DNA of 64,000 nucleotides from Trichosphaerium sp. ATCC 40318. Its lineage: Eukaryota > Protista > Tubulinea. The position numbers were made by a program, and so were the translations under genes. Within the stretch, counting starts at the first letter, position 1, and each line of letters begins with the position of its first letter. A model generated the notes under the pieces. It did not search any database. It was not told where the DNA came from and was given only the letters and a program-made list of their open reading frames with translations. Where the stretch lies: contig JALMLS010000213.1 in assembly GCA_038496445.1 (NCBI GenBank), forward strand, positions 1 through 64,000. The letters run 5' to 3'. Below are positions 7,814 through 37,541 of the stretch, piece after piece.

Positions 7814-8608
7814 ATGGACGAAGAACCTTCTCTTACGGATATTGTAGAGATAAACGTCGGTGGAACTATAATGGTGACAACAAGACGTACTTTATGCATT
7901 ATAGATGAGTCTGTACTATGTAGTATGTTCAGCGGTCGATGGAAAGGTAAACAAACGCTAGATAGTCAAGGTAGGATATTTTTAGATGTAAACCCTGATT
8001 ATTTCATGATTATATTGGATTCGCTTAGAGAAGCAGTGTTAACAGGTTCAAATACGTTACCAAAAGTTCGAAAGATGTTCAGAAAGGACTCTTGCTTTGC
8101 GTCTATTGTATCTTATTTTTGCCTTCTAAACACTGACTATATCGGCCCTGTCTTGGATAGATTTTATGAAACACGTGCGTATGGTGATATTGAGATTTCG
8201 TCTCTTTATGTTGTTTGTAAAAGAGAAGGTTTTCATTCGAGAACAATGGGTCTTGCTGGAGGTGAGAATATTTATCGTGAAAACACGTGGTATTTTAAGA
8301 TACATGGTACAAAAGGTGTATTTCTTGGTATTGTACCTGAAGCTACTATATTTCCTAGGGTTCAGAACGTATGCTATGGGTGGAGTGATTTAAAAAAGTA
8401 TTGCTTCGGGAATATACAAACTTATAGCAATGATATAAAGTTCAAGTATGTTGCTTTGCAATTAGAAGATGGAAGATTATCTATTGATGACGGTACTACA
8501 AAAGATTCCATGGAAATTCCTAAGGGCGTTGTGTGGAGGCTTTGCGTTTGGCTTGTGAATGAAGGGAGTAGAGTAAGAGTAATACGAAAACCAGATGCTA
8601 AGTTTTAG
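7814..8608 (+). CDS. Intronless KCTD/T1-type BTB/POZ protein with a beta-rich (SPRY-like?) C-terminal domain
   Basis: VEINVGGTIMVTTRRTL...SVLCSMFSGRW...GRIFLDVNPDYFMIILDSLR is a canonical KCTD BTB pattern. The C-terminal WYFKI..GVFLGIV..YGW..L.DGRLSI..WRLCV resembles SPRY (inference). Confidence 0.85.
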   Translation: MDEEPSLTDIVEINVGGTIMVTTRRTLCIIDESVLCSMFSGRWKGKQTLDSQGRIFLDVNPDYFMIILDSLREAVLTGSNTLPKVRKMFRKDSCFASIVSYFCLLNTDYIGPVLDRFYETRAYGDIEISSLYVVCKREGFHSRTMGLAGGENIYRENTWYFKIHGTKGVFLGIVPEATIFPRVQNVCYGWSDLKKYCFGNIQTYSNDIKFKYVALQLEDGRLSIDDGTTKDSMEIPKGVVWRLCVWLVNEGSRVRVIRKPDAKF

Positions 8609-9125: not shown

Positions 9126-10599
9126 ATGTCTGAACCGCAAAAAAAGAGGAGAAAACTGAACCCAAAGGTTGATACAGGAGTGACGTCAACTGAAACTACA
9201 ACAGAAAGCGCAACACAGTTCAAATGTGGAGATTTTAGCTTCACGCTATCGGAGGAGCTACTCAACGCGTACTCATCATCTCTTTTCGCGTCTAAAGTAC
9301 ATTTTGAATCACTACAAGATAATTCATCAACAAAAACCCTTTTGGAGGAATGCAGGTACATTTGAAGACTCCTTCATATGTTTAATGCGTATATCACTGT
9401 TATTAACGAAAATCAGTCATTCGAAGTATCTACCAACAATCTTGAGTTTTATGAAAAAGGAAGTACTGCCGAGTGTCGAAGATCCTGCAAATTTATGGCT
9501 TGCGGCTGAATACTATGGTGTACCTGTCGAATGGAAAAAACTAAATATGCTTGTGGGCACGTGTATTAATTTTCAACAAGCTTACGGCAATCTAGTGAAC
9601 AAGCTTCCAATTATGGCCACTACATTCCTTCTAGAAACAATACGAAAAGCTTTCAAGTCCCTTAAATCTACCCTACGAACAGCTGTAAACTTTAAGTACA
9701 ACACTATTGAGTTCTGATCTTATGTATAGGCGGCCTTAGGTAAAACTATGATCATTATTGGCACTGAAAGAGACACTATTTATTTACAAACAGAATATGG
9801 CAGAACTGCTTTAGAAAAGTACTGTAGCAACTATGCCTTGGTATGGTTTCTACAAGTACTTCGATTCACACTAACCGTTTGTTAGCATGTTAAATACACA
9901 CAAAATAAAGATGAACGTTTTGAAGCAACAATTTGTTGGAGTGATGAAGAAGTTGGAACTAAACTTGTAGTAACGAGATGTATGAATGCAATTTCAGGAC
10001 AATTTTGGGATTTTGCAAACTTGAGTATGCTTGTACTTGTGTTAATGTACATTAACTGAAGTACCTGTTTTAGCTGAAGAATTATGGGCTAAATCTCAGT
10101 ATTATACATGGAACACGGTATTCAAAAAAAGAGACAGGATGCGTCCACTCTATCTTCAAAAGGGAACAAAAGGAGCATCAACATTTACAGTACTTTGTCG
10201 TGATTGGAAGTATAAAAATCCAACAAGAATACCATGCGATTTTATGCTTGACACTCAGTACTGCATTCTCTCTATCAAGTATTTATAACTGACTTTGTTA
10301 CAGTCCAAAAGATATAGCCAATGCTGAGGAACTTGTAAACAATCCACGTATGAGAAGCAAGCTCAGACGTTTGTTGTGTGCCTTCGTCGAAATAGCAGTA
10401 TGTTGATTTTACTCTCAGTCCTTTTGTACTAACCAGTTGTAAATAGACTTTTAAGGAAGAAAAAGTACACCACGAAGACGTGCTTACCATCACATTGTCA
10501 TATCCAAAAATCGATGAAGCTATGCTTGACAATTATCTACCAATCTTTTGTACTGAACCATATAAAAACGATCAAACAATTCCGAAGACACCTAGATAG
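9126..10599 (+). CDS. Clade A NLS-BTB family protein (A3)
   Basis: MSEPQKKRRKLNP; conserved exon motifs; TAG 10597-10599. Confidence 0.82.
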
Positions 10600-10714
10600 C
10601 TACTTTATTTACCTGTAGGCAGTGAATCACTAAAATACAAGTGTTAAATAAATACGAATCCAGCTGCAAGAGAAATCTTTTATTAGTAGACAGTTGCAAT
10701 TGCATAATAATTTC

Positions 10715-12194
10715 CTATCTCTTAGGTTTAGGAAGGGTTTTGTCTTTTTGATAAATTGCTCTATAAATTGGTAAATATGCATCAAGCATAGCTTCATCAA
10801 TTTTTGGAAACGACAATGTGATGGTAAATACATCTTCACTGTATATCTTTTCTTCCAAAAACGTCTAATATCAAATTGTCAGACAGGAACGGGTGAGAGA
10901 AACTACTAAACATACGGCTATATCCAAGAACACACAAAACAAAACAACAAGCTTTCCTCGCATGAGTTTGTTTTTCACAAGCGCCTTTACGTTAGGTATA
11001 TCACCTGGACTACAAATAGTCAGATAAAAAACACCTTTTAGAGCGCGTACTGGGTGTCAAGTATAAAATCATTAGGTATATTTGCTGCACTGTCATGCTT
11101 CCAATCACGACAAAGTATAACAAATCTTGATGCTCCTGTTGTTCCCTTAGCAAGATACTCTGGACGTACCCAGTCTTTTTTTCTATAAACTGTGTGCCAG
11201 ATATAATATTGTGATTTGGCCCATAACTCTTCAGCTAAAACAACATACTTCAGTTAATGTGCATTAACACAAGTACAAGCATACTCAAGTTTTCAAAATC
11301 CCAAAATTTTCCTGATATTGCTGCAATACACCTCTTCTTTACAAGTTTAGGTCCAACTTCAAAATCACTCCAACAAACTGTTGCTTCTATTTTTTCGTCC
11401 TTATCTTTAGTATATTTAACATGCTAGTAAACAGTTAGTTTGCCAGAAAGCGCGTGTGGAAATCATACCAAAGAATAGTCATTGCAAAACTTTTCTAAGG
11501 CAGTTCTACCAAATTTTGTCTGTAAAAATACGCAATCTTTTTCATTGCCAATAATCCTCGTAGTTATACCAATGGCCGCCTAATACATAAATTAGAATTC
11601 ATGTATATGTAAGTTGTAGAAAAAAGCTTACTGCTTTTCGTAGCGCGCATTCAAGGACCGTCACCTCTTTTTGTATTTCTGCTAACAGGAATGTAACTGC
11701 CACAATAGGAAGCTTGTTAGCTACGTTGTTGTAAGTTCGCTGAATAATAACAAGCACGTGCCCACAAGCATATTTAGTTTTTTCCATTGAATTGGTACAC
11801 CATAGTATTCAGCTGCAAGCCATAAATTTGCAGGATCTTCGACACTTGGCAGTACTTCTTTTTTCATAAAACTCAAGATTGTCGGTAGATACTTTGAATG
11901 ACTGGTTTTTCGTTATTTCAAGGGAGCTTAGTATTTGCATTAGTCTCATACGTACTTGCATTCCTCCAACAGAGTTATTTTAGCTGAATTATCTTGTAAT
12001 GACTCAAAATGTACTTTAGACGCAAAAAGAGATGATGAGTACGCGTTGAGTAGCTCCTCCGATAGTGTGAAGCTAAAATCACCACATTTAAACTGTGTTG
12101 CGCTTTGTGCTGTTGATACTGACGCTTTTGTCTTTGCTACGCTTTTTTCAGGGATTGGGTTCAGTTTTCGCTTCTTTTTTTGTGGTTCAGACAT
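10715..12194 (-). CDS. Clade A NLS-BTB family protein (A4)
   Basis: ORF 11946-12194 is exon 1; downstream exons are recognisable on the minus strand; ends ...KTLPKPKR*. Confidence 0.82.
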
Positions 12195-12759
12195 GATTGT
12201 TACGGTTGATTATAAGTAAATGTTCAGGGTTTGACGCTTAAACACGTTGACTAATAAAGCACAAAAAATTACTTGTTTTTTTGATGTTTATTTAAGGTCG
12301 AACTGTAGATGTTTCGAAAAATACAAACCCCATTGTGGGAGAATTAAATCTCCTCTTCAGCAACTTTGTGTCGGGGACTTTGAACGATTTCCCGAGCTTT
12401 TTTCTTTAATATGCTCTGAAACGGTAGTAGCCATATCTTTTATATTGAACCAAATAGCGAAAGTTTCATTTACGTAGATAATGCACTGTCATTTTGTTCA
12501 GTGAAACTAAAGTGTCACATTTCAAGACGTGTTGATTCAAATTTCAGTTTGGCATTACTCATAACCTTAATAATCCATACCTCGTTGATAAAATGGGTAC
12601 GATCATGTTTATTCAACGTTTAATATTGCTTGCTACAATGTACTGAAAGCTCAATACTGGGATTACTGGTAGTCAATTCCTTTGATTAAATTAATACGTC
12701 TATGAAGTTGTAGTTTATTGATTCACTCACTGTCTTAAGCTTGTACACAAACTTAATTT

Positions 12760-14281
12760 TTAGTCTACAAAGTCTAAGTGTGGAAAGTGAAGTGTCACAG
12801 GAATTGTTTCGTCTGTTTGATAAGGTTCAGGACCATAGATAGGCAGATACGCATCAATCATTGCTTCATCAATTTTTGGATAAAGAAATATGAAGATAAA
12901 TGCGTCTTCTTTGACTATCTTTTCTCGTGCAAACATCTTATCACAGCGTTAGTAATAATGCTAGCGGTTTTTTGAGAAAACTCAAGGATAACTTACTGCT
13001 ACTTCCAAGAAGGCACACATTATATTACGGAGCTTTTTCCGCATTTGTGGATTTTTCACAAGGTCCAATGCATTGGGAATATCTTTTGGACTGTAACAGA
13101 AGTCAGTAATAAATAATTGGATAGAGAATGCAGTACTGAGTGTCAAACATAAAGTCGCATGTTACTCCATGTCTGTCATACTTCCAATCACGACAAAGTA
13201 CTGTAAACGTTGATGCTCCTTTTGTTCCCCGTTGAAGAAAGCCTTGTAGTAGCCTATATTTTTTTTTGAATACTGTATTCCATATGTAGTATTGAGATTT
13301 GGCCCATAACTCTTCAGCTAGAACAACATACTTCAGGTAAGGTACATTAACACAAGTACAAGCATACTCAAGTTGGCAAAATCCCAAAATTTTCCTGAAA
13401 TTGCTGCAATACACCTCTTCTTTACAACTTCAGGCCCAACATCGTCATCACTCCAACTAATTGCTGCTTCAAAACGGTTATCTTTATTCTTTGTAAATGT
13501 AACATGCTAATAAGTGAGGTTAGTTTGTACTGTGAAGCCCTAGTTGTGAACGTACCAAGGCGGCGCTGTCACAGTACTTTTCTAAAGCAGTTCTACCAAA
13601 TCTTGTCTGAACAAATACAGTGTCTGTTTCATTACCAATAACACTCATAGTTCTACCAACAAATGCCTAGTAGATCAAGTCAGCATTTTGTCAGGGCGAA
13701 AGAGTCATAGTGAAAGAACTTGCTGCTTTTCTTAGTTTAGATGCAAGAGACCTCAACTTTTTTTGTATTTCTTTGAGAAGGTATGTAGTTGCTACAATTG
13801 GAAGCTTGTGTACTAGATTGTTGTTAGTTCGCTAAACAGTAACGCACACGTGCCCACAAGCATATTTATATGCCTCCACACAACAGGTACGCCATAGTAT
13901 TCAGCTGCAAACCATAAGTTTGCAGGATCTTCAATACTTGTCTGTGCTTCTTTTCTCATCAAACTCAAGATTCTCGATAGATACTTTGAATGCCTGGTTT
14001 ATCAACAAAAGTAAGTACTACTAGTCTACGTGCGATGCCTACCTGCATTCCTCCAAAAGCGTTATTTCTGATGAGTTATCTTGTAATGACTCAAAATGTA
14101 CTTTAGACGCGAAAAGAGATGATGGATACTCATTTAGAAGCTCCTTCGATAGTGTGAAGCTAAAATCACCACATTTAAACTGTATTGAGCTTAATATAGG
14201 TTGTACTGATGTTTCTGTTTTAGTTACGCTTGTTTCAGCTGTTGGATTCAATTTTCGCTTCTTTTGTTGAGGTTCAGACAT
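12760..14281 (-). CDS. Clade A NLS-BTB family protein (A5)
   Basis: MSEPQQKKRKLNPTAETS; EELWAKSQYYIW exon; ends HFPHLDFVD*. Confidence 0.82.
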
Positions 14282-14524
14282 GCTTGGTGTCAGAAGTGGA
14301 GTTGCTTAGTTTATACTATTCTTCTTTCGAGTTGAAGTCTTAATCAGGAAAGGTCAGAAGACATGTGCTATCTCTAAGGTTTCACATTCACGCTTTGCAG
14401 CATTCTTTGTCTGTGTATGGCGTTACCAATCTCGAAGTTTGTTTGCTGTACGTATAGCAACAAGAATAACAACAAGGGAGTTTTAAAATTGGTTGCATTA
14501 GTAGTAGGTTTACATAATTATTTC

Positions 14525-15968
14525 CTATATCCTAGGTACTGTTTTGTCTTTTTGATATGTGGATCTATAGATAGGTAGATAGGCATCAAGCATAGCCTCA
14601 TCAATTTTTGGAAATGACAATGTGATGGTAAATACATTTGGAGTGTATATCTTTTCTTCCACAAACGTCTAATCAATTGTTAGCATAAGGAATAGACATA
14701 AAAGACAAACGCGAAACATACTGCTATATGCAACAGGATACAAAGCAAACCAACAAGCTTTCCTCGCATGAGTGGATTTTTCACAAGCGCCTTTACATTA
14801 GCTATATCATCTGGACTACAAATAGTTAGATAAAAAACACTTTATAGCAACGTACTGAGTATTAAGTATAAAATCATTAGGTATATTTGCTGCGCTGGTA
14901 TGCTTCCAATCACGACAAAGTATAATAAACCTTGATGCTCCTTGTGTTCCCTTAGCAAGATATTCCGGACGTACCCCTTCTTTTTTGTTAAAAATTGTGT
15001 GCCATGTACAATACTGAGATTTGGCCCATAACTCTTCTGCTAAAACAAGTATTAGGGAGTTTACTTAAAGATCAAGAACATACTCAAGTTTTGAAAATCC
15101 CAAAATTTTCCTGCAATTGCATCAATACCCCTCTTGTTTACAAGTTGAGGTCCAACTTCAGTGTCACTCCAACAAACTGTTGCTTCAATTTTTCCTTCGC
15201 TATCTTTTGTATATTTAACATGCTAACAGATGGGTTAGTTGTACTGTCAAGTACCAGCTGGAACCGTACCAAGGCACAGTCTTCACAGAACTTTTCTAAA
15301 GCAGTTCTACCAAATTTTGTATGGACAAATACGCAGTCTTTTTCATTACCGATAACACTTGTAGTTTTACCTGTAGCCGCCTATATACAAGATTGGAATT
15401 CTGTGTAAGTAGAAAAAAGCTTACGACACTTCTTAAGGTAGATTCCAGGGACTGAAACTCTTTTTGTATTTCTGATAGAAGGTATGTAATAACCATAATT
15501 GGAAGCTTGTTAGCTAGATTGGTCGTAAGCTTACTTAACCATTGCAAGCACGTGCCCACAGTCATATTTAGTGTTTCCCATCTAATAGGTACACCATAGT
15601 ATTCAGCTGCAAACCATAAACCTGCAGGATCTTCTATACTTGAGCGTTTTTCTCTTTTCATCAAACTCAAGATTGTCGGTAGATACTTTGAATGACTGGT
15701 TTTTTATCAGCGACACACGCATTGTGAATTATGAAGGAGTCTTTACGCACCTGCATTCCTCCAAAAGCGTTGTTGTTGATGAATTATCTTGTAGTGATTC
15801 AAAATGAACTTTAGACGCAAAAAAAGATGATGGATATGCGTTGAGAAGCTCCTCCGATAGTGTGAAGCTAAAATCTCCACAGTTAAACTGTATTGAGGTT
15901 TCTGTTTTTGCTGCGCTTGTTTCAGCTGTTGGATTCAATTTTCGCTTCTTTTGTTGAGGTTCAGACAT
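14525..15968 (-). CDS. Clade A NLS-BTB family protein (A6)
   Basis: Exon 1 is ORF 15729-15968; EDPAGLWFAAEYYGV; ends KDKTVPRI*. Confidence 0.82.
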
Positions 15969-16128
15969 GTTGTTGTCGTAAAAGTTTGCTTTGATTGAAA
16001 ATGAAAGTGTAATTTTAAGTCCGTAAACAGGAACTTGTCACATGCACTATCACGACAACATGTCTGAACCTCAACTAAAGAAGCGAAAATTGAATCCAAC
16101 AGCTGAAAACAAGCGCAGCAAAAACAGA
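15901..16128. repeat. ~77-bp inverted repeat: start of gene A6 duplicated head-to-head
   Basis: 16052-16128 (acgacaacatgtctgaacctcaactaaagaagcg...gcaaaaacaga) is the near-exact reverse complement of 15901-15979; ~70-bp spacer. Confidence 0.9.
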
Positions 16129-16424
16129 TTTTGAGTTGGCGGTGAGAAAACGTTAGAAACGCTAGATACTATGGTCCATAAACAACACCACATTGGAGGA
16201 GACCTCCGTCTCTTCGCTTGAACGCTTGGTCACAAGCCTGAGACCCTTGTTATTAAAGTCGCAGACAATAAAACAATCACCGAAAAAACTTAGCAACTAT
16301 CCTTCGGCGACTCCTGTATTCGGTAAACTAGCGTTGCACATTTATCTTCATGCAACTTGTGAATTGGTTAATTCGTAATCTTACATCTGTAGTTTATTGA
16401 TTCACTTGAGGTGATACATATTAG

Positions 16425-17950
16425 TTATCTCTTAGGCACAAAGTCTAAGTGTGGAAAATGTAGTGTCTCAGGAATTGTTTCATCTTTTTGATAAGGTTCA
16501 GGATCGTAGATAGGCAGATAATCATCAAGCACAGATTCATCAATTTTTGGATATGTAAATATGAAGATAAATGCGTCTTCTTTGACGATTTTTTCTTCCA
16601 CAAACGTCTGGTGCAAATTGTTAGTACAAAAGGGATTTTGCGAGTAAAACATCAAGATAACGTACTGCTACTTCCAAGAAGGCACACATCAGACGGCGGA
16701 GCTTATTTCGCATGCTTGGATTTTTCACAAGGTCCAATGCATTGGGAATATCTTTTGGACTGTAACAGAAGTCAGTAATAAATACTTTGATAGAGAGAAT
16801 GAGTACTGAGTGTCAAACATAAAATCACATGTTATTCCATGTCTGTCATACTTCCAATCACGACAAAGTACTGTAAACGTTGATGCTCCTATTGTTCCTC
16901 GTTGAAGATAGCCAGAAAGAAACCGCGGTTTCTTTGCATATACAGTATTCCATATGTAGTATTGAGATTTGGCCCATAACTCTTCAGCTAGAACAACATA
17001 CTTCAGTTAATGTACATTAACACAAGTACAAGCATACTCAAGTTGGCAAAATCCCAAAATTTTCCTGAAATTGCTGCAATACACCTCGTCCCTACAAGCT
17101 CAGATCCAACATCGTCATCACTCCAACAAATTGCTGCGTCAAACCGTTCATCGGTATCTTTTGTAAATTTAATGTGCTAGTAAGCGAGGTTAGTTTACTG
17201 TACTGTGAAACTTGTTGGAGCCATACCAAGGCAGCCCTTTCACAGTACTTTTTTAAGGCAGTTCTACCATATCTTGTCTGTATAAATAAACAGTCTTTTT
17301 CATTACCAATAACACTCATAGTTCTACCAACAGCCGCCTAGTATTTAAGATCAAAATGTGTATGGTAGTTGGTGCAGTAAGAACTTACTGCTTTTCTTAG
17401 GGTAGATGCAACGGACTTGAACTTTTTTTGTATTTTTTTGAAAAGGAACGTAGTTGCCACAATTGGAAGCTTGTTTACTAGATTGCCGTAAGCTTGCCGA
17501 AAATTAATGTACACGTGCCCACAAACATATTTAGTTTTTCCCATTCGACAGGTACACCATAGTATTCAGCTGCAAACCATAAATTTGCAGGATCTTCTAT
17601 ACTCGACAGTATTTCACTTTTCATCAAACTCAAGATTGTCGGTAGATACTTTGAATGGCTGATTTTCGTTAAAAAATGCATCTATAAATACTACAGAGTC
17701 TTCGCACATACCTACATTCCTCCAAAACGGTTGTTGCTGATGAATTATCTTGTAGTGACTCAAAATGGACTTTTGATGCGAAAAGAGATGATGGATACGC
17801 GTTGAGAAGCTCCGCTGATAGTGTGAAGCTAAACTCACCACATTTAAACTGTATCGCACTTTCTTTTGGTGCTACTAACGTTTTTTTATTTGCTGCGGTT
17901 GGTACAGTCTTGGGATTCAGTTTTCTCTTCTTTTTTTGTGGTTCAGACAT
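16425..17950 (-). CDS. Clade A NLS-BTB family protein (A7)
   Basis: Exon 1 is ORF 17669-17950; the last exon lies in ORF 16425-16655 (HFPHLDFVPKR*). Confidence 0.82.
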
Positions 17951-18089
17951 TACGTTATCGTTACAACCACTTAAATGCGTTGATTAAGCAAGTATTTGTA
18001 AAAGAAAACCATTTTTACGTTATTATTTATTCAAGTCTTTGCTGTTGCGGACTGTTTTAAACATTTGGCAAAGTAGATCTTCGTCTGGT

Positions 18090-18790
18090 CTTGGTTCTTG
18101 TACAATGTCGCGTGTTTGCATCTTTGTTTGGATATGCTCGAGACTAGGGTCGTACTGATTTTCGACATTTTGCTACACGTGCTCTTCTAATTTTTGCATA
18201 TGCCGAGACCCTGATTTGAGAAAAGTCGTCGTGGCTATCAAACAAATGAGGTTTGAAATATTATACCAGATACGCACATTGGTATGTCAAAGTGAATGTT
18301 TAGCACCACGCCTGTGATTTGGCGTTCAGTATTCGTTTTCGAAAAACCAAACTCGTAAGCTTGTATGTCTACCTGTTCTTCATATGCAATGGCAATGGCT
18401 ATGTCATATGCTCTAACAGGCTGCCAGTTTACAAATACAGCGGTTGCCCACAACCTCTCGCCTAGACACAGTAAATAATGAAAATAGATCAGTAACGTAT
18501 ACTGTACAAACAATTCTGAAACCCATTAGACACATGGAAACCTTGCCGCATATGTACTGACAAGGATGTTAAATTTGAATCCTTATCCAGATAGAGATAA
18601 GTATTTGTTTTAGAATCTACCTTACATGCTATGTTATGCATGATGCTTATCGGTGATTAACAAATAAAACACTATGTCAAAATAGGTGGCCAAAAAGGTG
18701 CCAATGGGCACCACGTAGCGCCATTTCCCTGAAACCCACTAATTTTCTCCCATTATTCATAACCACCATTATCCGTAACACCTAGGTTCA
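18090..18790 (-). pseudogene. Clade B fragment
   Basis: Exon GERLWATAVFVNWQPVRAYD...VVLNIHFDIP (ORF 18238-18513) is paralogous to 21376-21645. No intact 5' part found. Confidence 0.55.
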
Positions 18791-19210
18791 ACGTTTGATT
18801 TATTTTGCAGATAGCTATTTTGTAGTTGAACAATATAACACTAAATTGTTTACCAAATACCAAATACTTGGCAAGACGATAGATTTGTTATCATCACTTA
18901 CATGTTTGTAGACTATCAACAGTCACTGCAATGCTTCAAAATTGCTAGTTTTGCGCTAGTGTGTCAAGTTTAAAATGTTACAAGATTCACCGAAATATTA
19001 GCATTGCGTGTCATACGATTCAAGTGTCAAATGTCATTTTGTTCAGTGAAAGTAAAGTGTCACCTTTCAAAGTGAACAACTGATTCAAAACTGGTAGGCA
19101 TCTATAGCATCAATGTAGTTACTAAACCTAAAGGAGGATTCATTTGACATTTACCATTCCGTTTTCGGAATTTATTCATACAATTAAACCTAATAGTTTA
19201 TGTACTATTT

Positions 19211-19631
19211 CTAACTACCTGGAAGAGTTTGATCTTCAGCATATGGGGCGATGTATGTTTGTAAATCATCGAGCATTGTTCGGATTGACAGCGTCACTAT
19301 ATACATTTTTTCGCCAGTACCCATCTTCAACAAGAGTCTGTATGAACGTTTAGTATGAGTTGTAAATATATTAAATATACATACAGCCAGCTCCAAGAAT
19401 GAGCACAATACGCTTGCAGGGTACAATAATTGTATAAAGCAATGTACAAATTCGACAACTTTCAAAAATGTCCTGAAACTGCTACACATCTTTCCTTCAA
19501 TATCCAATTCCTGGTCTGACCAATATATTGTAACCTCATCAACGGTATTATTGCCTTTAGTGTACTTAGAGGACTGGTAAACTATTAGCATTTAAATCTC
19601 TTGTTTACTATACATACCAAGCTGTGTTGTT
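19211..19631 (-). pseudogene. Clade A internal fragment, closest to A11 (27713)
   Basis: SKYTK..VDEVTIYWSDQELDIE and ASVLCSFLELAV match A11, but exon 6 is deleted and frameshifts are present; the 5' half is missing. Confidence 0.8.
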
Positions 19632-19762
19632 AATTTCCAGAACTGACAAGATCCGTCAGATCTTGTAGTTTTTGACAGATCTTGCAAGAACTAACAAGAT
19701 CTTGTAACAACTAACAGAAGTTCCAAGATCTGTCAATTTTGTTAGTTCTTGCAAGATCTTAC
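19632..19762. repeat. AGATCT-rich short-unit repeat with a perfect 21-bp inverted repeat
   Basis: Multiple (c)aagatct(tg)/aactaaca units; agatcttgcaagaactaacaa (~19677) and ttgttagttcttgcaagatct (~19739) are exact reverse complements. Confidence 0.8.
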
Positions 19763-20054
19763 ACTCTGATACTTCTAACCTGTAGCAAACTTGAATGATA
19801 CGGATATTAGTAAAACTTGAATATATCAAACTTTTTAGTAATTACACCAATGGTGGCTAGTACACGCCATGTACAATACAAAGGCTCACGTAGCAATCAA
19901 TTATAACGTGTACACAAGAAATAGTAAAAGAACAAGATTGTACATATTAGTACTACAATGGCATTGTAGAAGAATTAAGGAGTCAAATTTCGTTTTTTGA
20001 CAATTCTGGGTTCCATTAATATTTCTTGCATGTTTTATCGATTCACAGTCTACG

Positions 20055-21262
20055 CTATCTTGGCGTCTTTGGAATTGTTTGATCGTTTTGATATGGCTCA
20101 GTACAAAAGATAGGTAGGTAAGATTCAAGCATAGCCTCATCAATTTTTGGATATGACAATGTGATGGTAAGCACGTCTACATGGTGTACTTTTTCTTCCA
20201 CAAACGTCTTAATACAACAGGTTAGTACAAAAGGTTAGTACACGATGATTGTGGGATAAATTAAACATAACTTACTGCTATATCCAAGAAAGCACACAAC
20301 AAACTTCTGAGCTTGCTTCTCATGCGTGGATTTTTCACAAGTTCCTCAGCATTGGCTATATCTTTTGGACTGCAACAAAGTCAGTTATAAATACTTGATA
20401 GAGAGAATGCAGTACTGAGTGTCAAGCATAAAATCGCAGGGTATTCTTGTTGGATTGTCATACTTCCAATCACGACAAAGTACTGTAAATGTTGATGCTC
20501 CTTTTGTTCCCTTTTGAAGATAGAGTGGACGCATCCTGTCTCTTTTTTTGAATACCGTGTTCCATGTATAATATTCAGATTTGGCCCATAACTCTTCAGC
20601 TAAAACAACATACTTCAGGTAAGGTACATTAACACAAGTACAAGCATACTCAAGTTTGCAAAATCCCAAAATTGTCCTGAAATTGCATTCATACATCTCG
20701 TCTCTACAACTTCCCTTCCAACTTCTTCGTCACTCCAATAAACTGTTGCTTCAACTACATTATTATTTTTGTCTGTTGTGTATTTAACATGCTAACAGAT
20801 AGGTTAGTTTGAATCGAAGCACTTGTAGAAAGCATACCAAGGCATAGTAGCTACAGTACTTTTCTAAAGCAGTCCTACCAAATTCTGTTTGTACACAAAT
20901 GGTGTCTTGTTCAGTGCCAATAACGCTCATAGTTTTACCTAATGCCGCCTATACATAAGATCAGAACTCTACAGCTGCAGCTAAAGCTTACTTCTGTTCT
21001 TAGGTTAGATTCAAAGGACTTGAACGCCTTTCGTATTGTTTCTAGAACGAATGTAATAGCCATAATTGGAAGCTTGTTAGCTAGATTGTCGTAAGCTTGC
21101 TGAATAATAGTATACACGTGCCCACAATCATATTTAGTTTTTCCCATCGAATAGGGACACCATAGTATTCAGCTGCAAACCATAAACCTGCAGGATCTTC
21201 AACACTTGAACGTTTTTCTCTTTTCATCACACTCAAGATTATCGGTAGAAACTTTGAATGAC
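20055..21262 (-). pseudogene. Clade A copy lacking exon 1 (A8), exons 2-8 apparently intact
   Basis: Starts at HSKFLPIILSVMK. Upstream lies the 3' part of a clade B gene instead of exon 1. Exon 6 is nearly identical to that of A3. Confidence 0.7.
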
Positions 21263-21339: not shown

Positions 21340-22737
21340 GTACTGCTTTTTTCACTAGTTCAGTTAAGTACTCTTTTAATTTTCTACAATGAAGCGAGTT
21401 TTTCGATTGAACAAAAAAATCATTGAGCCTAAACATAATGAGGTTTGAAACGTTAAGTCAGATACTTGCAAGTATACTTGGAAGTCTATGTTTGCCTCCA
21501 CATTTTGGATGGTACTTGTAATATTCCTTACAGAGATACCAAACGAGACAGCTCGCTTGTCAACTTTAACGTTGTAGTTTCTACTAATTTCTGCCTCATA
21601 TTTAGTTACCTGGCTCCAATTCTCGTACACAGCTCTTGCCCACAACCTTTCACCTAGAGAAAGGTTAATGGTTTAAATTCACCCTTCATACACAGGCTTT
21701 TGCACTGGTCCCAGCGGCCTTCCTTGATATCATCGTAATGATTTTGCTTTATGTTCTCACTTATTTGTGAGTCATCCCATATAAAGCGCACAGATTTTGC
21801 ACTTATAGCGTACGACTAAATGTATTATTTGTGGTTTGCTAGATAAAGTCGTACTAAATTAAAGTTTGGATCGTTGCAGTATGCGTCTAACACCGCTTTG
21901 CCATTGACAGACGCCAAATACTCCGTACTACTATCCAACTCGAACGAATATTCAAACCAACCCAAATGTGCCTTTGAAAACAAATTAGCAAGTACTGTGT
22001 AATCAATCAACTTACTACTCCGACTAGTTTCGACTTTATTTGGTCTATAAACACCTGCGCCACACACATTGTTTCTGATGGCGACAAACCTGAATCAGAA
22101 CTTAATATAACAGCTCTAGAAACAAAACGTACTCCCTGGAAGTCGTACACCAAAATAATTCAGTGCATCGTTCAACTCTTCAATGGTAGCTACCTCACTC
22201 GGCGCTAATTGAGGATTTGGTTGTTGCATAATCTCCACAACCGTTGGGAGAAGATTAAAATACCTATACATAGTAAGAAATAAAGCACGTATCAATCGGT
22301 GTACTTTTCGTCCGTTAATCTAATTATCTCGTTCCCATTGCTGGCAAGAAACTCATCCGCAAACATAGAGCCCTCATACTTTCGCAGTTGATCTCTTGTT
22401 AACGAGAAATCATAGTCACGCATGACAAATAAAATCGGTTGGGCTACTTCTACTGGAGGAGTAGGTGGAGTAGGAGGAATTGCAGACTGTACAGTCCTTA
22501 TATAAGGTCAGAACGTTCAATTTGTGAGTGAGTACGTACCAATCTTCATCGGTTGACCAAAAAACACGTTGAATATTAGGGTCTGCGAAGTTAATAGTGT
22601 TGTCACTCTCAAGGTGTTCTTTACTACGTCAACAAATAGCTTTGAATCGGTTTACTACACGCACCAAACATACTATCTACATAGCCGCTATTGTTTTCAA
22701 ACGTCTCATTTTCCTTTGTTCTCTTCGGCGCACTCAT
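21340..22737 (-). CDS. Clade B BTB-like protein with Pro-rich linker; last exon apparently lost
   Basis: MSAPKRTKENE...IPPTPPTPPVEVAQPILFVMRDYDFSLTRDQLRKYEGSMFA...ALNYFGV...ERLWARAVYENW; runs into A8 intron 1. Confidence 0.6.
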
Positions 22738-23399: not shown

Positions 23400-24066
23400 A
23401 AGAATAGTAAGCTCAGGACCAACTTCAGTGGCCAAACTAATTCGTCTTTATCTTTGACGTCTGCTGAGGTTATTAAATATATTGTTCGATATTTCTAATG
23501 CTTCTCCGCCTGTTCTGAAATTAGTTACTTGACTTGTACGTGTGCATCAACATACAGGAATATTAAGCGCATCTTGTATTCCAAAGCTCTTGTGCTTGCT
23601 TGAGTACGTCAACGGTAACAATTGTCAGCTAAGTTACTACACTCGCCAGTATTTGAAGTATTGTGTCACGTGTGCCATAAAGTTCAGCTAAATCTCCATA
23701 GAAAGTTATTTAACTGCAAACCATAAATTGGTAGGATCTTTAATACCTTCTATTTCATGTTTCATTTTTTATTGGCAGATTTTGAATGGCTTTGTCGTAA
23801 CGTTAAAAGAGCGCGTGTTATTTGATTGTACGTACCTACATTCCTCCAAAATCGTTGTTGTTGATGAATTATCTTGTAATGATTCAAAATGTACTTTAGA
23901 CGCGAAAAAAGATGACGAATACGCGTTTAGAAGGTCCTGTGATAGTGCAAAGCTAAAATCACCACATTTAAACTATTTCCGCTTGAGTTGTTGATACAGT
24001 CGCTTCAGCGTTAGTTTCAGTGCTAGGATTTAATTATCGCTTCTTTTTTTGGTGGCTTGGAACATT
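23400..24066 (-). pseudogene. Decayed clade A copy (A9)
   Basis: Exon-1 core CGDFSFALS...SKVHFESLQDNSSTTTILEEC is still clear. The NLS region, exon 2 and later exons carry stops and deletions. Confidence 0.8.
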
Positions 24067-24345
24067 ATGCTGGCACATTAACGACTTAATGTAAGGGATG
24101 TCAGGAGAAATGATGCCGAGATGAAAGAAAATGTGAAATTTCAAGCACAATTTTTTTTGAACAAATGAAACAGCCTTGTAGTCTCAAGTACTGTGAATAA
24201 CCTCAAAACACGTGATAATTAGTTGCAAAAAAAAAGAGTGCGCAACGATCAATCAAGCTGCGGTAACGATCCAATAGCGTATTGTTTGTGCATGCCAACC
24301 AAAGCCATCCTTTCAAAGTTACATTAAATTTATATGCGAAACATC

Positions 24346-27333: not shown

Positions 27334-27712
27334 AAGCTGCAATGTACTTGTGGTTGTAAAAGAACTTACTAGAAATAAATCAGATTGATTTTTTGAATAA
27401 AAGAAACAGTTTAGTGGATTTAAATACGCCAAAACGTTTTACTACGCGTAAGTATTGCGCTGGTGTATTAGGTTTTCGTATCAACACCTCGACTCATTCG
27501 AAGTACATAACGTACTTTTCAACCCGACGCAGCTGTAATAGTTGCTTTCTTAGGTTCGATAACTCTACTGTTGTTGTCTTAATTAGGAAAGGTTGGAAGA
27601 TATTACGAAGTCCGAAAAGCTGCGAATGCAACCCCACATATCATAGTGCCTACTTCAGAGTTTGTTAGTGTGAATTTGCATTGACGCCTGGACTACTGCA
27701 ACAACTTAAAAA

Positions 27713-29174
27713 ATGGCTGAACCACAAAAAAAGAAGCGAAAGTTGAATCCAAAGACAGAAAAGAGCGTAACAAAGAAAAATACAAGAGTAGAAACAACAA
27801 AGAATGAAGTACAGTTTAAATGTGGTGATTTTAGCTTTACACTTTCAGAAAGGCTTCTAAACGAGAATCCATCATCTCTTTTTGCGTCTAAAGTACATTT
27901 TGAGTCACTAAGAGATAAATCATCAGAAATAACGCTTATGGAGAAATGCAGGCACGTATCATCAATATAAATACGTACAAACTAATTTTAAACACATTCA
28001 GTCATTCAAAATACCTACCTACACTTGTAAAGCTGATAAAAGAAGCTGAAGTGACGAAAATCGAAGATCCAACCAACGTTTGGTTTGCAGCAGAATATTA
28101 TGGCGTGTCAATTATCTGGAGAAACTTGAACATGCCTTACGGCACGTGCCCAAGCTTATGTATTAAGTTAACAGAATCATAGCAATCAAGTTGAAGGTTG
28201 TTGCTGTTAATAACATACTAAGAAGAATACGAGATGATTGGGAAACTCTTAAAAGTTCACTCCGACAAAACGTAAGTTCTTCTACAATAAACCAATACTA
28301 AATCAAAAGGCGGCATCTGGTGTAAACTCATATGCCGTAGCTAAAGTAAGAGATAAAGTATATTTAAGGACAGAATTGGGTAGAATTGCTTTGACAAAGT
28401 ACTTTAAACAACACAGCTTGGTATGCACGGTAAACCAGAGTTGTACATACTTACATTTTTCCAGTGTTCTAAATACACTAAAGACGGCAATGGCGTTGAT
28501 GAGATCACGGTCTATTGGTCAGACCAAGAATTGGATATTGAAATTGTAAAGGAAAGATGTATTGAAGCAGTTTCAGGTCATTTTTGGAAGTTTTCAAACT
28601 TGAGTACGTTGTTTTTATACAAATACGTAGCCGCTTATGTACTCGTTATTAGCTGAAGAGCTGTGGGCCAAATCTCAATATGTAAGGTGGAGTAAAATAC
28701 ATAAACAAAAAAATCGTATACACCTAGCGTATATGAAGCAAGGAGCAATAGGAGCTGTTAGATTTATTGTATTATGTCATGATCAGACAGTAACACCAAA
28801 TCCAGCCATATGTCGTCATTTTACACTAGAACTTGAGTACGTTTGTTCTAAAACGCTGACTAACCTTTGGTGGTATAGTTCCAATGATGAAATAAACGTT
28901 CAAGCTCTTAAACAAAATAAACAGATGCGTAGCAAGTTTGCAAGTGTATTGTGCTCATTCTTGGAGCTAGCAGTATGTTTATTTAACCTGTTTACACCCT
29001 TACTAAATGTTCGTGCAGACTCTTGTTGAAGATGGGTGCTATGGCGAAAAAACGTATACAATGACACTATCAATCCCTAAAGTTGATGAAGCTATGCTTG
29101 ATGAGTACTTACAAATATACGTTGCCCCATATACTGAAGATAAAACTCTTCCAAGTATAGAAACAAGTACATAA
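27713..29174 (+). CDS. Clade A NLS-BTB family protein (A11)
   Basis: MAEPQKKKRKLNP; GC donors at introns 1 and 2; ends EDKTLPSIETST*. Confidence 0.82.
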
Positions 29175-35841: not shown

Positions 35842-37385
35842 TTATCTTGGTTGAAGTATTTCATGTATTCGCGTTGGATCAAATGGAGTAAGAAAGATTG
35901 GTAAAAAGTCATCAAGCATGGCGTCATCAACTTTTGGAATTGTTAATGCAAGTATGAATGTGTTTTTATTGTAAATTCTTTCTTCCACAAAAGTCTGTTT
36001 AATCGTTAATCATATAAATGATGAACCAACGTACTGCTACTTCCAAGAAGGTGCACAATATTCTTATAAGTTTTTTCCTCATCTGTTTATCTTTTAGCAG
36101 AGCCTGCACTGAATAAGCCTCCGCTGGACTACATCATAAGTTAGTCAATAACACTGAACTTATCAAAGGTTGTATACAACATACTGCCGCTTAATCATGA
36201 AGTGATAAGGAATGTTTGTAGGATTTTCTGTTAGCATATCATGACACATCACAATAAACAATTCTGCACCTATTGAGCTTTGGTGGATATATGCAGTCCG
36301 TAACTCCTTTCTTTGTTTAAATACATCATTCCATCGCTTATACTGTGATTTAGCCCATAACAGTTCTGCTAAGCAACGCATTAGACTGCCGAATGTGCAC
36401 CTGAAAACGTACTTAAGTTTGCATACTCCCATTCTATCCCTGCGATAGCATGAAGACACCGCTTTTGTACAACTTCAAGTCCAACTTCTTCATCTGTCCA
36501 CAATACTTTTATTTGGTTTAGACCAGTGTCATTTTGTGTATATGTGTAATGCTAATGTACCATAGTTAGTACCAACAGTAAGTGTTAACATCTTACCAAG
36601 TTACATTGTTTAAAGTACTTTGCCAAAGCTGCTCTGCCTAAGCGTGTTGTTATATACTGTTCATTTGTTTCATCACCAACAATCTCTGAGTTATCACCAT
36701 TACTCGCCTATTGCAACTTAGAGACATTAGATGCTATGAATGACTAACATTCATTTTTAGGTAACCTTGAAGGTATTCCCAAAACTCTCTAACTTTTTCA
36801 AGAATATTTGTGACAGCAAGAATCTTCAACTTACTACCTATGTACAGTATCAGCAATTAAAGAAGTGTACACTAGTGTTCACGTGCCAAAAGGCATATTG
36901 ATATCTTTCCAAACAATAGGTACACCATAGTATTCAGCTGCAAACCACAAATTTGACGCATCTTCAATACTCTTCATTTCTTCTTTTTTCATCAAACGCA
37001 AGATTGTCGGGAGGAACTTTGAGTGGCTAACGGTTAAAATAGTAAGTATGTCGCAGTGATGAATATATCGGTTGACGTGCCTACAATCCTCCAGGACAGT
37101 TGTTTTTGTAGAAGTATCGCGCAGTGATTCAAAATGTACTTTAGAAGCAAAAAGAGATGATGAATACGCGTTGAGTAGCTCTTTCGATAGTGCAAAGCTA
37201 AAATCACCACATTTAAACAGAATTGACGTTTCTATTGATGATACGCTTGTTTCTTTCCCTGGTGCTGTTTCATTCGTTGCTAGAGGTGCTTGCCTTGCTT
37301 CTATAGAGTTTGTCGTATTTACATTCGTTACCGAAGTTTCAGTGCTTGGATTTAACTTCTTCTTCTTCTTTGGAGGCTCTGACAT
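35842..37385 (-). CDS. Clade A NLS-BTB family protein (A16)
   Basis: MSEPPKKKKKLNP; ELLWAKSQYKRW; ends EILQPR*. Confidence 0.8.
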
Positions 37386-37541
37386 TGTAGTGTAGTACAC
37401 CAGTGTAATTCAGAATACAATTGACTTTATTTAGTAAATGATACGCAGATTTTGTACTTCTATTTTTTTATTCGACTATCTTGGGAAAGGGCTTACAATA
37501 TTATTGAACACTTTGCGTCGCAAGTACTGCTTAGTAAAGAA

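Follow-up and report, generated by a model that had tools for sequence, protein, structure and literature searches.

Gene Family and Gene Models

We analyzed a 64,000-nucleotide (nt) stretch of DNA from Trichosphaerium sp. ATCC 40318, hereafter called the window, which makes up the first 64 kilobases (kb) of the 424-kb contig JALMLS010000213.1 (C31) and in which six neighboring genes, A3 to A8, belong to one gene family. An earlier note on this DNA had described these genes as a patchwork of one another that arose by segmental gene conversion or exon shuffling, and had proposed that cassette-like reassortment of their parts creates new specificity combinations. The assembly analyzed comprises 70.3 megabases (Mb) in 642 contigs with a GC content of ~37%; the published draft genome of Trichosphaerium sp., a marine amoeba, has 70.87 Mb, 37.7% GC and a mean intron length of 75 nt (PMC10521059).

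Comparison of the window with itself revealed ~25 copies of the family. In the whole genome, exon 1 had at least 55 matches, which are mostly arranged in tandem within C31:1-105 kb; further matches are found throughout contig C363, at the end of C236 and on C44, C74, C6, and C3. Forty-six copies are near full length and 31 of these passed a strict intactness test that required a start codon, canonical splice sites and an open frame. Thus, this is a working gene family. Its genes typically have eight exons and encode about 380 amino acids (aa), with introns of 39–68 nt. The family has not been described previously, while gene conversion itself is a known phenomenon. A3–A8 form a young sub-cluster within this large tandem family, and their positions in the window are as follows:

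9126..10599, + strand: A3, intact, eight exons and seven introns (39–61 nt each), 379 aa, inverted relative to A4–A8; modeled from alignment and reading frames
9126-9355, 9417-9556, 9596-9684, 9730-9840, + strand: exons 1–4 of A3
9886-10024, 10074-10257, 10304-10397, 10447-10599, + strand: exons 5–8 of A3
10715..12194, - strand: A4, intact; partner in the 3' part, A6
12760..14281, - strand: A5, intact; partner in the 3' part, A7
14525..15968, - strand: A6, intact; partner in the 3' part, A4; the sole gene of the six with a different intron 5
16425..17950, - strand: A7, intact; partner in the 3' part, A5
20055..21261, - strand: A8, exons 2–8 without exon 1, 303 codons with frame and splice sites intact; partner in the 3' part, A3

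The introns of A3–A8 are of the GT/GC-AG type, and the donor of intron 2 is GC (GCACGT) in all six genes (A3: 9557-9562). GC-AG introns with a GCACGT donor are unusually frequent in the family; they comprise intron 2 of all copies, intron 1 of ~10 of the 46 copies and intron 3 of A5.

Shared Ancestry of Exons 3–8

In the whole-gene tree, the A3–A7 clade received 100% support, and its sister was a frameshifted copy on C74. Every segment from exon 3 to exon 8 gave the same three pairs, (A3,A8), (A4,A6), and (A5,A7), each of which was supported at 100% when the segments were combined. The earlier note had counted as mosaic the similarity of A3 and A8 in exon 6 (96% identity), that of A4 and A6 in exons 6–8 (83–87% identity) and the HFPHLDFV tail that A5 and A7 have in common. 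All three similarities are real. Given the congruence of exons 3–8, however, they reflect ordinary shared ancestry and not mosaicism. The FPHL tail is also found in the outgroup copy on C74 and is therefore ancestral. The segment trees were incongruent between the 5' and 3' parts of the genes, as the earlier note had anticipated, but not from exon 3 to exon 8. A simple duplication history would account for this backbone: a two-gene unit, (A7,A6)/(A5,A4), would have undergone tandem duplication and A3 and A8 would form a further pair, of which A3 was inverted, leaving three sister pairs that can be followed from exon 3 to the stop codon.

Mosaic Tracts in the 5' Part and around Intron 5

True mosaicism was restricted to the first ~0.45 kb of the genes, which extends from exon 1 to intron 2, and to ~110 nt around intron 5. 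The tracts identified are as follows:

14227..14281, - strand: A5 side of the tract shared by A5 and A6, the first 55 nt of exon 1, 55 of 55 positions identical to A6
15914..15968, - strand: A6 side of the same tract
A3 9230-9317 versus A4 11994-12081: patch in the middle of exon 1 shared by A3 and A4, 83 of 88 positions identical
A3 9417..9521, + strand, versus A4 11797-11901: exon-2 tract shared by A3 and A4, 100 of 105 positions identical
A6 15556..15695, - strand, versus A8 21122-21261: exon 2 shared by A6 and A8, 130 of 140 positions identical (93%)
A3 9522..9595, + strand, versus A7 17478-17553: end of exon 2 and intron 2 shared by A3 and A7, 69 of 76 positions identical
A3 9986..10098, + strand; A4 11210-11323; A5 13293-13406; A7 16963-17076; A8 20575-20688: intron-5 stretch

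Within the first ~0.45 kb, partners switched every 50–150 nt, in the order A5 with A6, A3 with A4, then A6 with A8 together with A3 with A4, and then A3 with A7. The overall identity between A5 and A6 was 91% in exon 1, and that between A3 and A4 was 94% in exon 2, where the partners expected from the 3' tree were less similar to each other (86% for A4 and A6 and 81% for A3 and A8). In intron 2, A3 was 92% identical to A7 and 90% identical to A8. Per-segment identities showed that intron 1 was not shared even where the flanking parts of the exons were. The intron-5 stretch had 102–112 of 114 positions identical among A3, A4, A5, A7, and A8, compared to 84–86 of 113–114 positions identical to A6; for intron 5 itself, the identities were 90–98% among the five genes and 61–64% to A6. 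The older tracts were 92–96% identical, and some patches were 100% identical over 55–115 nt.

These comparisons bear out the earlier note with regard to the common 5' end of A5 and A6, the common exon 2 of A3 and A4, the common intron 2 of A3 and A7 and the nearly identical intron 5 of A3, A4, A5, A7, and A8. The note had also described KREKRSS as an insertion in exon 2 of A6 and A8. The sequence is indeed shared by these two genes, but it is a patch of substitutions, as exon 2 is 140 nt long in all six genes. Exon shuffling, the second mechanism that had been suggested, is not supported by the positions of the tract ends, which fall within exons 1, 2, 5, and 6 and not in introns: the A5–A6 tract ends 55 nt into exon 1, the A3–A4 tract ~105 nt into exon 2, and the intron-5 tract in exons 5 and 6.

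A perfect 14-nt palindrome, TTAATGTACATTAA, was noticed in the homogenized intron 5 of A3 (10042-10055) and also in that of A7; it is broken in A5 and A8. A search of Rfam with the intron-5 stretch returned no family. We rejected intron 5 as a conserved RNA element, given this result and the lack of compensation for the broken palindromic hairpin in A5 and A8, and also as a family-wide conserved intron, given that its conservation is absent in the rest of the family.

Tests of Incongruence and Recombination

In approximately unbiased (AU) tests, the 5' part rejected the 3' topology (p = 0.001), as did exon 2 alone (p = 0.0004) and exon 1 alone (p = 0.015). The 3' part likewise rejected the 5' topology (p = 4e-5). 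The segment trees supported (A5,A6) at 91% in exon 1 and (A6,A8) at 99% bootstrap in exon 2. The pairwise homoplasy index (PHI) test was significant for the whole gene (p < 0.0005) and for the 3' part alone (p = 0.006). In a GENECONV-style runs test, A5 and A6 shared 18 consecutive polymorphic sites in exon 1 (permutation p <= 0.0005), and the pairs A3–A7 and A5–A8 were significant in intron 5 (p = 0.001–0.004); the earlier note had named GENECONV among the programs to be run. The claim that the closest relative changes along the gene is thus sustained by the AU, PHI, and runs tests beyond chance. The per-segment identities placed a switch of nearest neighbor at the exon 2/intron 2 border, where a breakpoint scan also located the best single break (difference in corrected Akaike information criterion (AICc), 90).

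The reversal of relationships extends to silent sites. The number of synonymous substitutions per synonymous site (dS) was 0.46 in exon 2 versus 0.22 in exons 3–8 for A3–A8 and 0.15 versus 0.40 for A6–A8; between exon 2 (or exons 1 and 2) and exons 3–8, it changed from 0.17 to 0.63 for A4–A8 and from 0.45 to 0.26 for A5–A7. This reversal between the regions and the sharing of introns 2 and 5 argue that the mosaics are not the result of amino-acid convergence, and the argument of the earlier note that shared introns favor recombination over selection therefore holds. Nor would a functional intron element explain the data, because the intron-5 hairpin is broken and the other family members lack a conserved intron 5. 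The ratio of nonsynonymous to synonymous substitutions (dN/dS) was 0.2–0.5 in exons 1–2 (up to ~0.9 in exon 2 alone for two pairs that include A8) and 0.3–0.7 in exons 3–8. Judged by these ratios, the C-terminal half is less constrained, but a sign of gene-wide positive selection is absent.

The exchanged regions are the most conserved ones of the family, namely exons 1–2 and the exon ends that flank intron 5. Third-position conservation was also higher in exons 1–2, which hints at homogenization throughout the family but is only suggestive, as it is confounded with amino-acid constraint. Support for the A3–A7 clade was 100% in the family tree of the 5' part and likewise in that of the 3' part; thus, the exchange partners are local. 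Adjacent copies elsewhere in the array showed similar, weaker 5'/3' conflicts, with ultrafast bootstrap (UFboot) values of 71–87.

A Second Copy of the Array

Contig C363 corresponds over its whole length (29.5 kb) to C31:11470-40705, as a second copy that is reversed and diverged, with blocks of 93–99% identity. A different set of genes occupies its middle (C363:6964-16520 versus C31:26440-33754), and A8 is missing from it, with only fragments at the A8 site. C363 may be a residual haplotig that survived the Redundans reduction of the assembly, or a recent segmental duplicate. Matches to BTB_2 with identical scores were observed on pairs or trios of small and larger contigs (C29/C408, C2/C577, and C172/C280/C328), which suggests that many short contigs of the assembly are duplicate haplotypes.

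The same mosaics were present in C363, and their repetition there argues against chimeric assembly. The divergence between C31 and C363 was 0.1% for A4, 0.8% for A5, 2.2% for A6, and 5.0% for A7, and all the differences in A5 fell within the first 600 alignment columns. At 42 of the 104 substitutions between C31 and C363 in three genes, both states were found in other paralogues, compared to 20–28 expected; the substitutions were also clustered (p = 0.003–0.004). In the A7 copy of C363, a ~115-nt patch over intron 6 is identical to A5, intron 2 is A4-like and intron 5 is of the A5/A8 type.

An additional difference lies just upstream of A6:

16057..16128, + strand: copy of ~72 nt from the beginning of A6 exon 1, in inverted orientation, inserted ~88 nt before the A6 start codon (ATG); absent from C363

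Together with A6 exon 1, this inverted copy makes up a long inverted repeat (15901-16128), which gave sub-threshold matches to microRNA precursors in Rfam. The 72-nt insertion resembles the footprint that template-switch repair may leave, or it could yield a hairpin RNA directed against the shared 5' end of the family. As read from the sequences, the clustered, paralogue-matching differences between C31 and C363 and the 72-nt insertion suggest that exchange is continuing.

Origin of the Mosaics

We propose that the mosaics originated by short-tract interlocus (non-allelic) gene conversion superimposed on the simple duplication history described above, and estimate the probability of this explanation at about 85%. 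A break in one copy would be repaired by copying tens to ~150 nt from a neighboring paralogue without crossover. Conversion would cluster where the paralogues are most alike, that is, in exons 1–2, which encode a conserved N-terminal module, and at the conserved ends of exons 5 and 6; as a result, relationships would be scrambled in the first ~0.45 kb and intron 5 homogenized in five of the six genes. Exchange in the most conserved regions is what homology-dependent repair predicts. We infer this repair mechanism, as well as the direction and timing of each event, from comparison of the copies, and the location of the tracts was probably set by homology and not by a dedicated mechanism. Of the processes that the earlier note had suggested, segmental gene conversion is the one that agrees with the 5'/3' incongruence of the trees, the inclusion of silent sites, the involvement of the inverted A3 and the patches of C363 that match other paralogues.

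Several observations weigh against this explanation. The PHI test within the 5' part alone, which contains 62 informative sites, was not significant (p = 0.45), and about half of the AICc gain at the best breakpoint was also obtained by partitioning without a change of topology. The family trees of 46 copies contained no 5'/3' conflict at UFboot >= 95. Neither the direction nor the one-way nature of the exchange can be read from two copies, and an old unequal crossover could be the source of part of the 5'/3' switch. The youngest patches, which are 100% identical, could in principle be errors of short-read polishing, and the ambiguous status of C363 as haplotig or duplicate bears on the comparison of the two array copies.

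Unequal crossing-over between misaligned tandem copies, which would generate 5'/3' hybrid genes, each joined at a single point close to the exon 2/intron 2 border, is quite unlikely as the general source of the mosaics. The single best breakpoint at this border explains much of the signal, and the copy content differs between the two array copies, with A8 missing from C363; the array therefore does undergo unequal exchange. The 5' part is, however, a patchwork in which the partners differ every 50–150 nt, each gene contains several small patches, and intron 5 is an isolated internal patch. Moreover, A3 is on the opposite strand to A4, A7, and A8, yet has internal patches in common with each of them. 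Crossover between inverted copies would flip the interval and not move a patch, and simple unequal crossover thus cannot be the source of the patches in A3.

A dedicated system of cassette or exon reassortment, which would recombine modules for new binding specificities as the earlier note had supposed, is very improbable. The family is large, tandem, and lineage-specific, its C-terminal half is divergent and exchange is apparently continuing, all of which such a system would share. The divergent exons 3–8, which are the plausible specificity part, were nevertheless never reassorted among the six genes and were inherited as one congruent block, whereas it is the most conserved parts that were exchanged, in tracts that end within exons. 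Most copies are intact with their own start codon and are not silent donors, and the dN/dS of 0.3–0.7 is without a region-wide excess.

There is similarly little chance that the mosaics are artefacts of assembly or polishing, i.e., chimeric consensus sequences or short-read "correction" between paralogues. The assembly was produced by Canu from noisy long reads, followed by three rounds of short-read polishing with Pilon and by Redundans reduction (PMC10521059). The array is located at a contig end, C363 is short and consists only of repeats, and some patches are 100% identical over 55–115 nt. The paralogues are, however, just 70–90% identical, which is far below the level at which copies collapse or reads are mis-mapped. 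The older tracts have 92–96% and not 100% identity, as real events would after aging, the mosaics recur in two separately assembled contigs, and reading frames and splice sites are intact in all copies.

It is barely credible that the incongruence was mimicked, without any exchange, by differences in rate together with convergent selection acting on the N-terminal module: although exons 1–2, with a dN/dS of 0.2–0.4, are more constrained and have few informative sites, and the 5' trees are poorly resolved family-wide, the reversal extends to synonymous sites and to introns 2 and 5, the hairpin of intron 5 is unconserved, as is intron 5 itself in the rest of the family, and the AU tests were significant both ways.

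Comparison with Known Gene Clusters

Interlocus gene conversion is known in tandem clusters such as those of the globin, opsin, MHC/KIR, and plant NBS-LRR genes. As in these clusters, the tracts of A3–A8 are short (tens to a few hundred nt), the partners lie near each other and closely resemble one another, the exchange extends to introns and synonymous sites and leaves copy number and orientation as they were, and evolution is concerted in the conserved parts but divergent elsewhere. What differs is the host, an amoebozoan whose sexual cycle is unresolved, and the gene family, which is undescribed.

Segmental conversion also underlies cassette antigenic variation, as in the trypanosome VSG, Neisseria pilE/pilS, and Borrelia vlsE systems. 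Mosaic genes are assembled there, as here, from short conversion tracts of neighboring family members. Those systems, however, have silent donors and one expression site and target the variable region, whereas in the Trichosphaerium family intact genes exchange their conserved region.

The Encoded Protein

The predicted protein begins with a basic KKKRKLNP motif, followed by a very conserved module that spans exons 1–2. Protein searches were run exon by exon, and exons were joined only locally, for frame checks and estimates of dN/dS. In two family members, the frame stays open from exon 1 through intron 1 into exon 2, as the intron is a multiple of three in length and contains no stop (36879-37400, - strand; L002:868-1533, + strand), and these members were used as contiguous references for searches and folding. 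No copy without introns was found in the genome when one was sought.

Neither BTB nor any other family was found in Pfam with exons 1 and 2 singly or with the two intron-1 read-throughs, and PDB sequences yielded no hit at E <= 10, whether a single sequence or either of two profiles was the query. Just upstream of A3 is a single-exon gene of 264 aa (7814-8608, + strand) with a Pfam BTB_2 (KCTD-type) match (E = 1.5e-8), and the genome contains at least 33 BTB_2 matches. In BLASTP, exon 1 had no match to this neighboring gene, and hhalign against BTB_2 domains of the same genome was not significant (E = 0.12). The AlphaFold2 (AF2) model of the read-through N-terminal module is weak, with a predicted local distance difference test (pLDDT) score of 65, and has the strand–strand–helix order of a BTB domain. 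Foldseek with this model found no match. The top VIA-wide matches include the BTB domains of KCTD9, KCTD7, KCTD17, KLHL26, and gigaxonin, at Z values of 2.7–3.5 that are within noise, and the nearest named clusters of the ESM Atlas are mostly PF00651 (BTB), at 0.91–0.92. Given these weak hints from fold comparison and from the protein language model, we regard the N-terminal module as probably a divergent BTB-like domain. With an exon-6 profile, a search of 1.84 billion representative proteins revealed no true relatives and four false positives among repeat proteins; the C-terminal half therefore stays an orphan.

Lineage-specific tandem arrays of BTB adaptors that recruit substrates to Cullin-3 include the nematode BATH/MATH-BTB and the grass MATH-BTB genes. 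Like these arrays, the family described here consists of dozens of tandem copies with a conserved, probably BTB-like N-terminal module and a far more variable C-terminal half. Unlike them, it has no sequence match in Pfam or PDB, just the weak leads given above, its C-terminal part is not MATH, kelch or any recognized domain, and there is no excess of dN over dS. We advance only tentatively, and with considerable doubt, the idea that this is an amoeba-specific family (at least 55 members) of BTB-like ubiquitin-ligase adaptors whose C-terminal recognition domain is an orphan that diverges fast; local conversion would then keep the scaffold modules alike, whereas the recognition blocks would drift apart.

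Other Sequences near A7 and A8

A further copy of the 5' part of the family gene is located beyond A8:

23694..24073, - strand: decayed fragment (exon 1, intron 1, and part of exon 2) with stops and indels, ~79% identical to all six genes

We considered whether this fragment is the detached exon 1 of A8 and rejected this possibility, as it overlaps A8 in model positions and is thus a separate decayed copy. Between A7 and A8, positions 19185-19631 contain a 3'-half fragment of another family copy, which is 77–79% identical to the copy at 27710-29155. Short open frames, apparently of another gene family, are found among A7, A8, and the decayed fragment (21376-22423 and 18238-18513, both - strand). 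Two of these short frames carry an LWA..V..W motif that resembles the start of exon 6 of the A family, and they may represent a distant relative or a decayed copy.

Biological Implications

For the family itself, there is a practical warning that its trees should be based on exons 3–8 only. The family is large, intact, and lineage-restricted, has an unrecognized C-terminal domain and may merit its own study. If the adaptor hypothesis were true, these genes would correspond, in an amoebozoan, to the BTB adaptor arrays of nematodes and plants that are thought to act in pathogen defense, with a possible link to the heavy traffic of this amoeba with giant viruses. The process that most probably produced the mosaics is a textbook one, in which the conserved part of a tandem family undergoes concerted evolution; it has not been described before in this organism. 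With this origin, the mosaics show that paralogues are actively repaired from one another by homologous recombination, probably to this day, in this amoeba, which has an unresolved sexual cycle.

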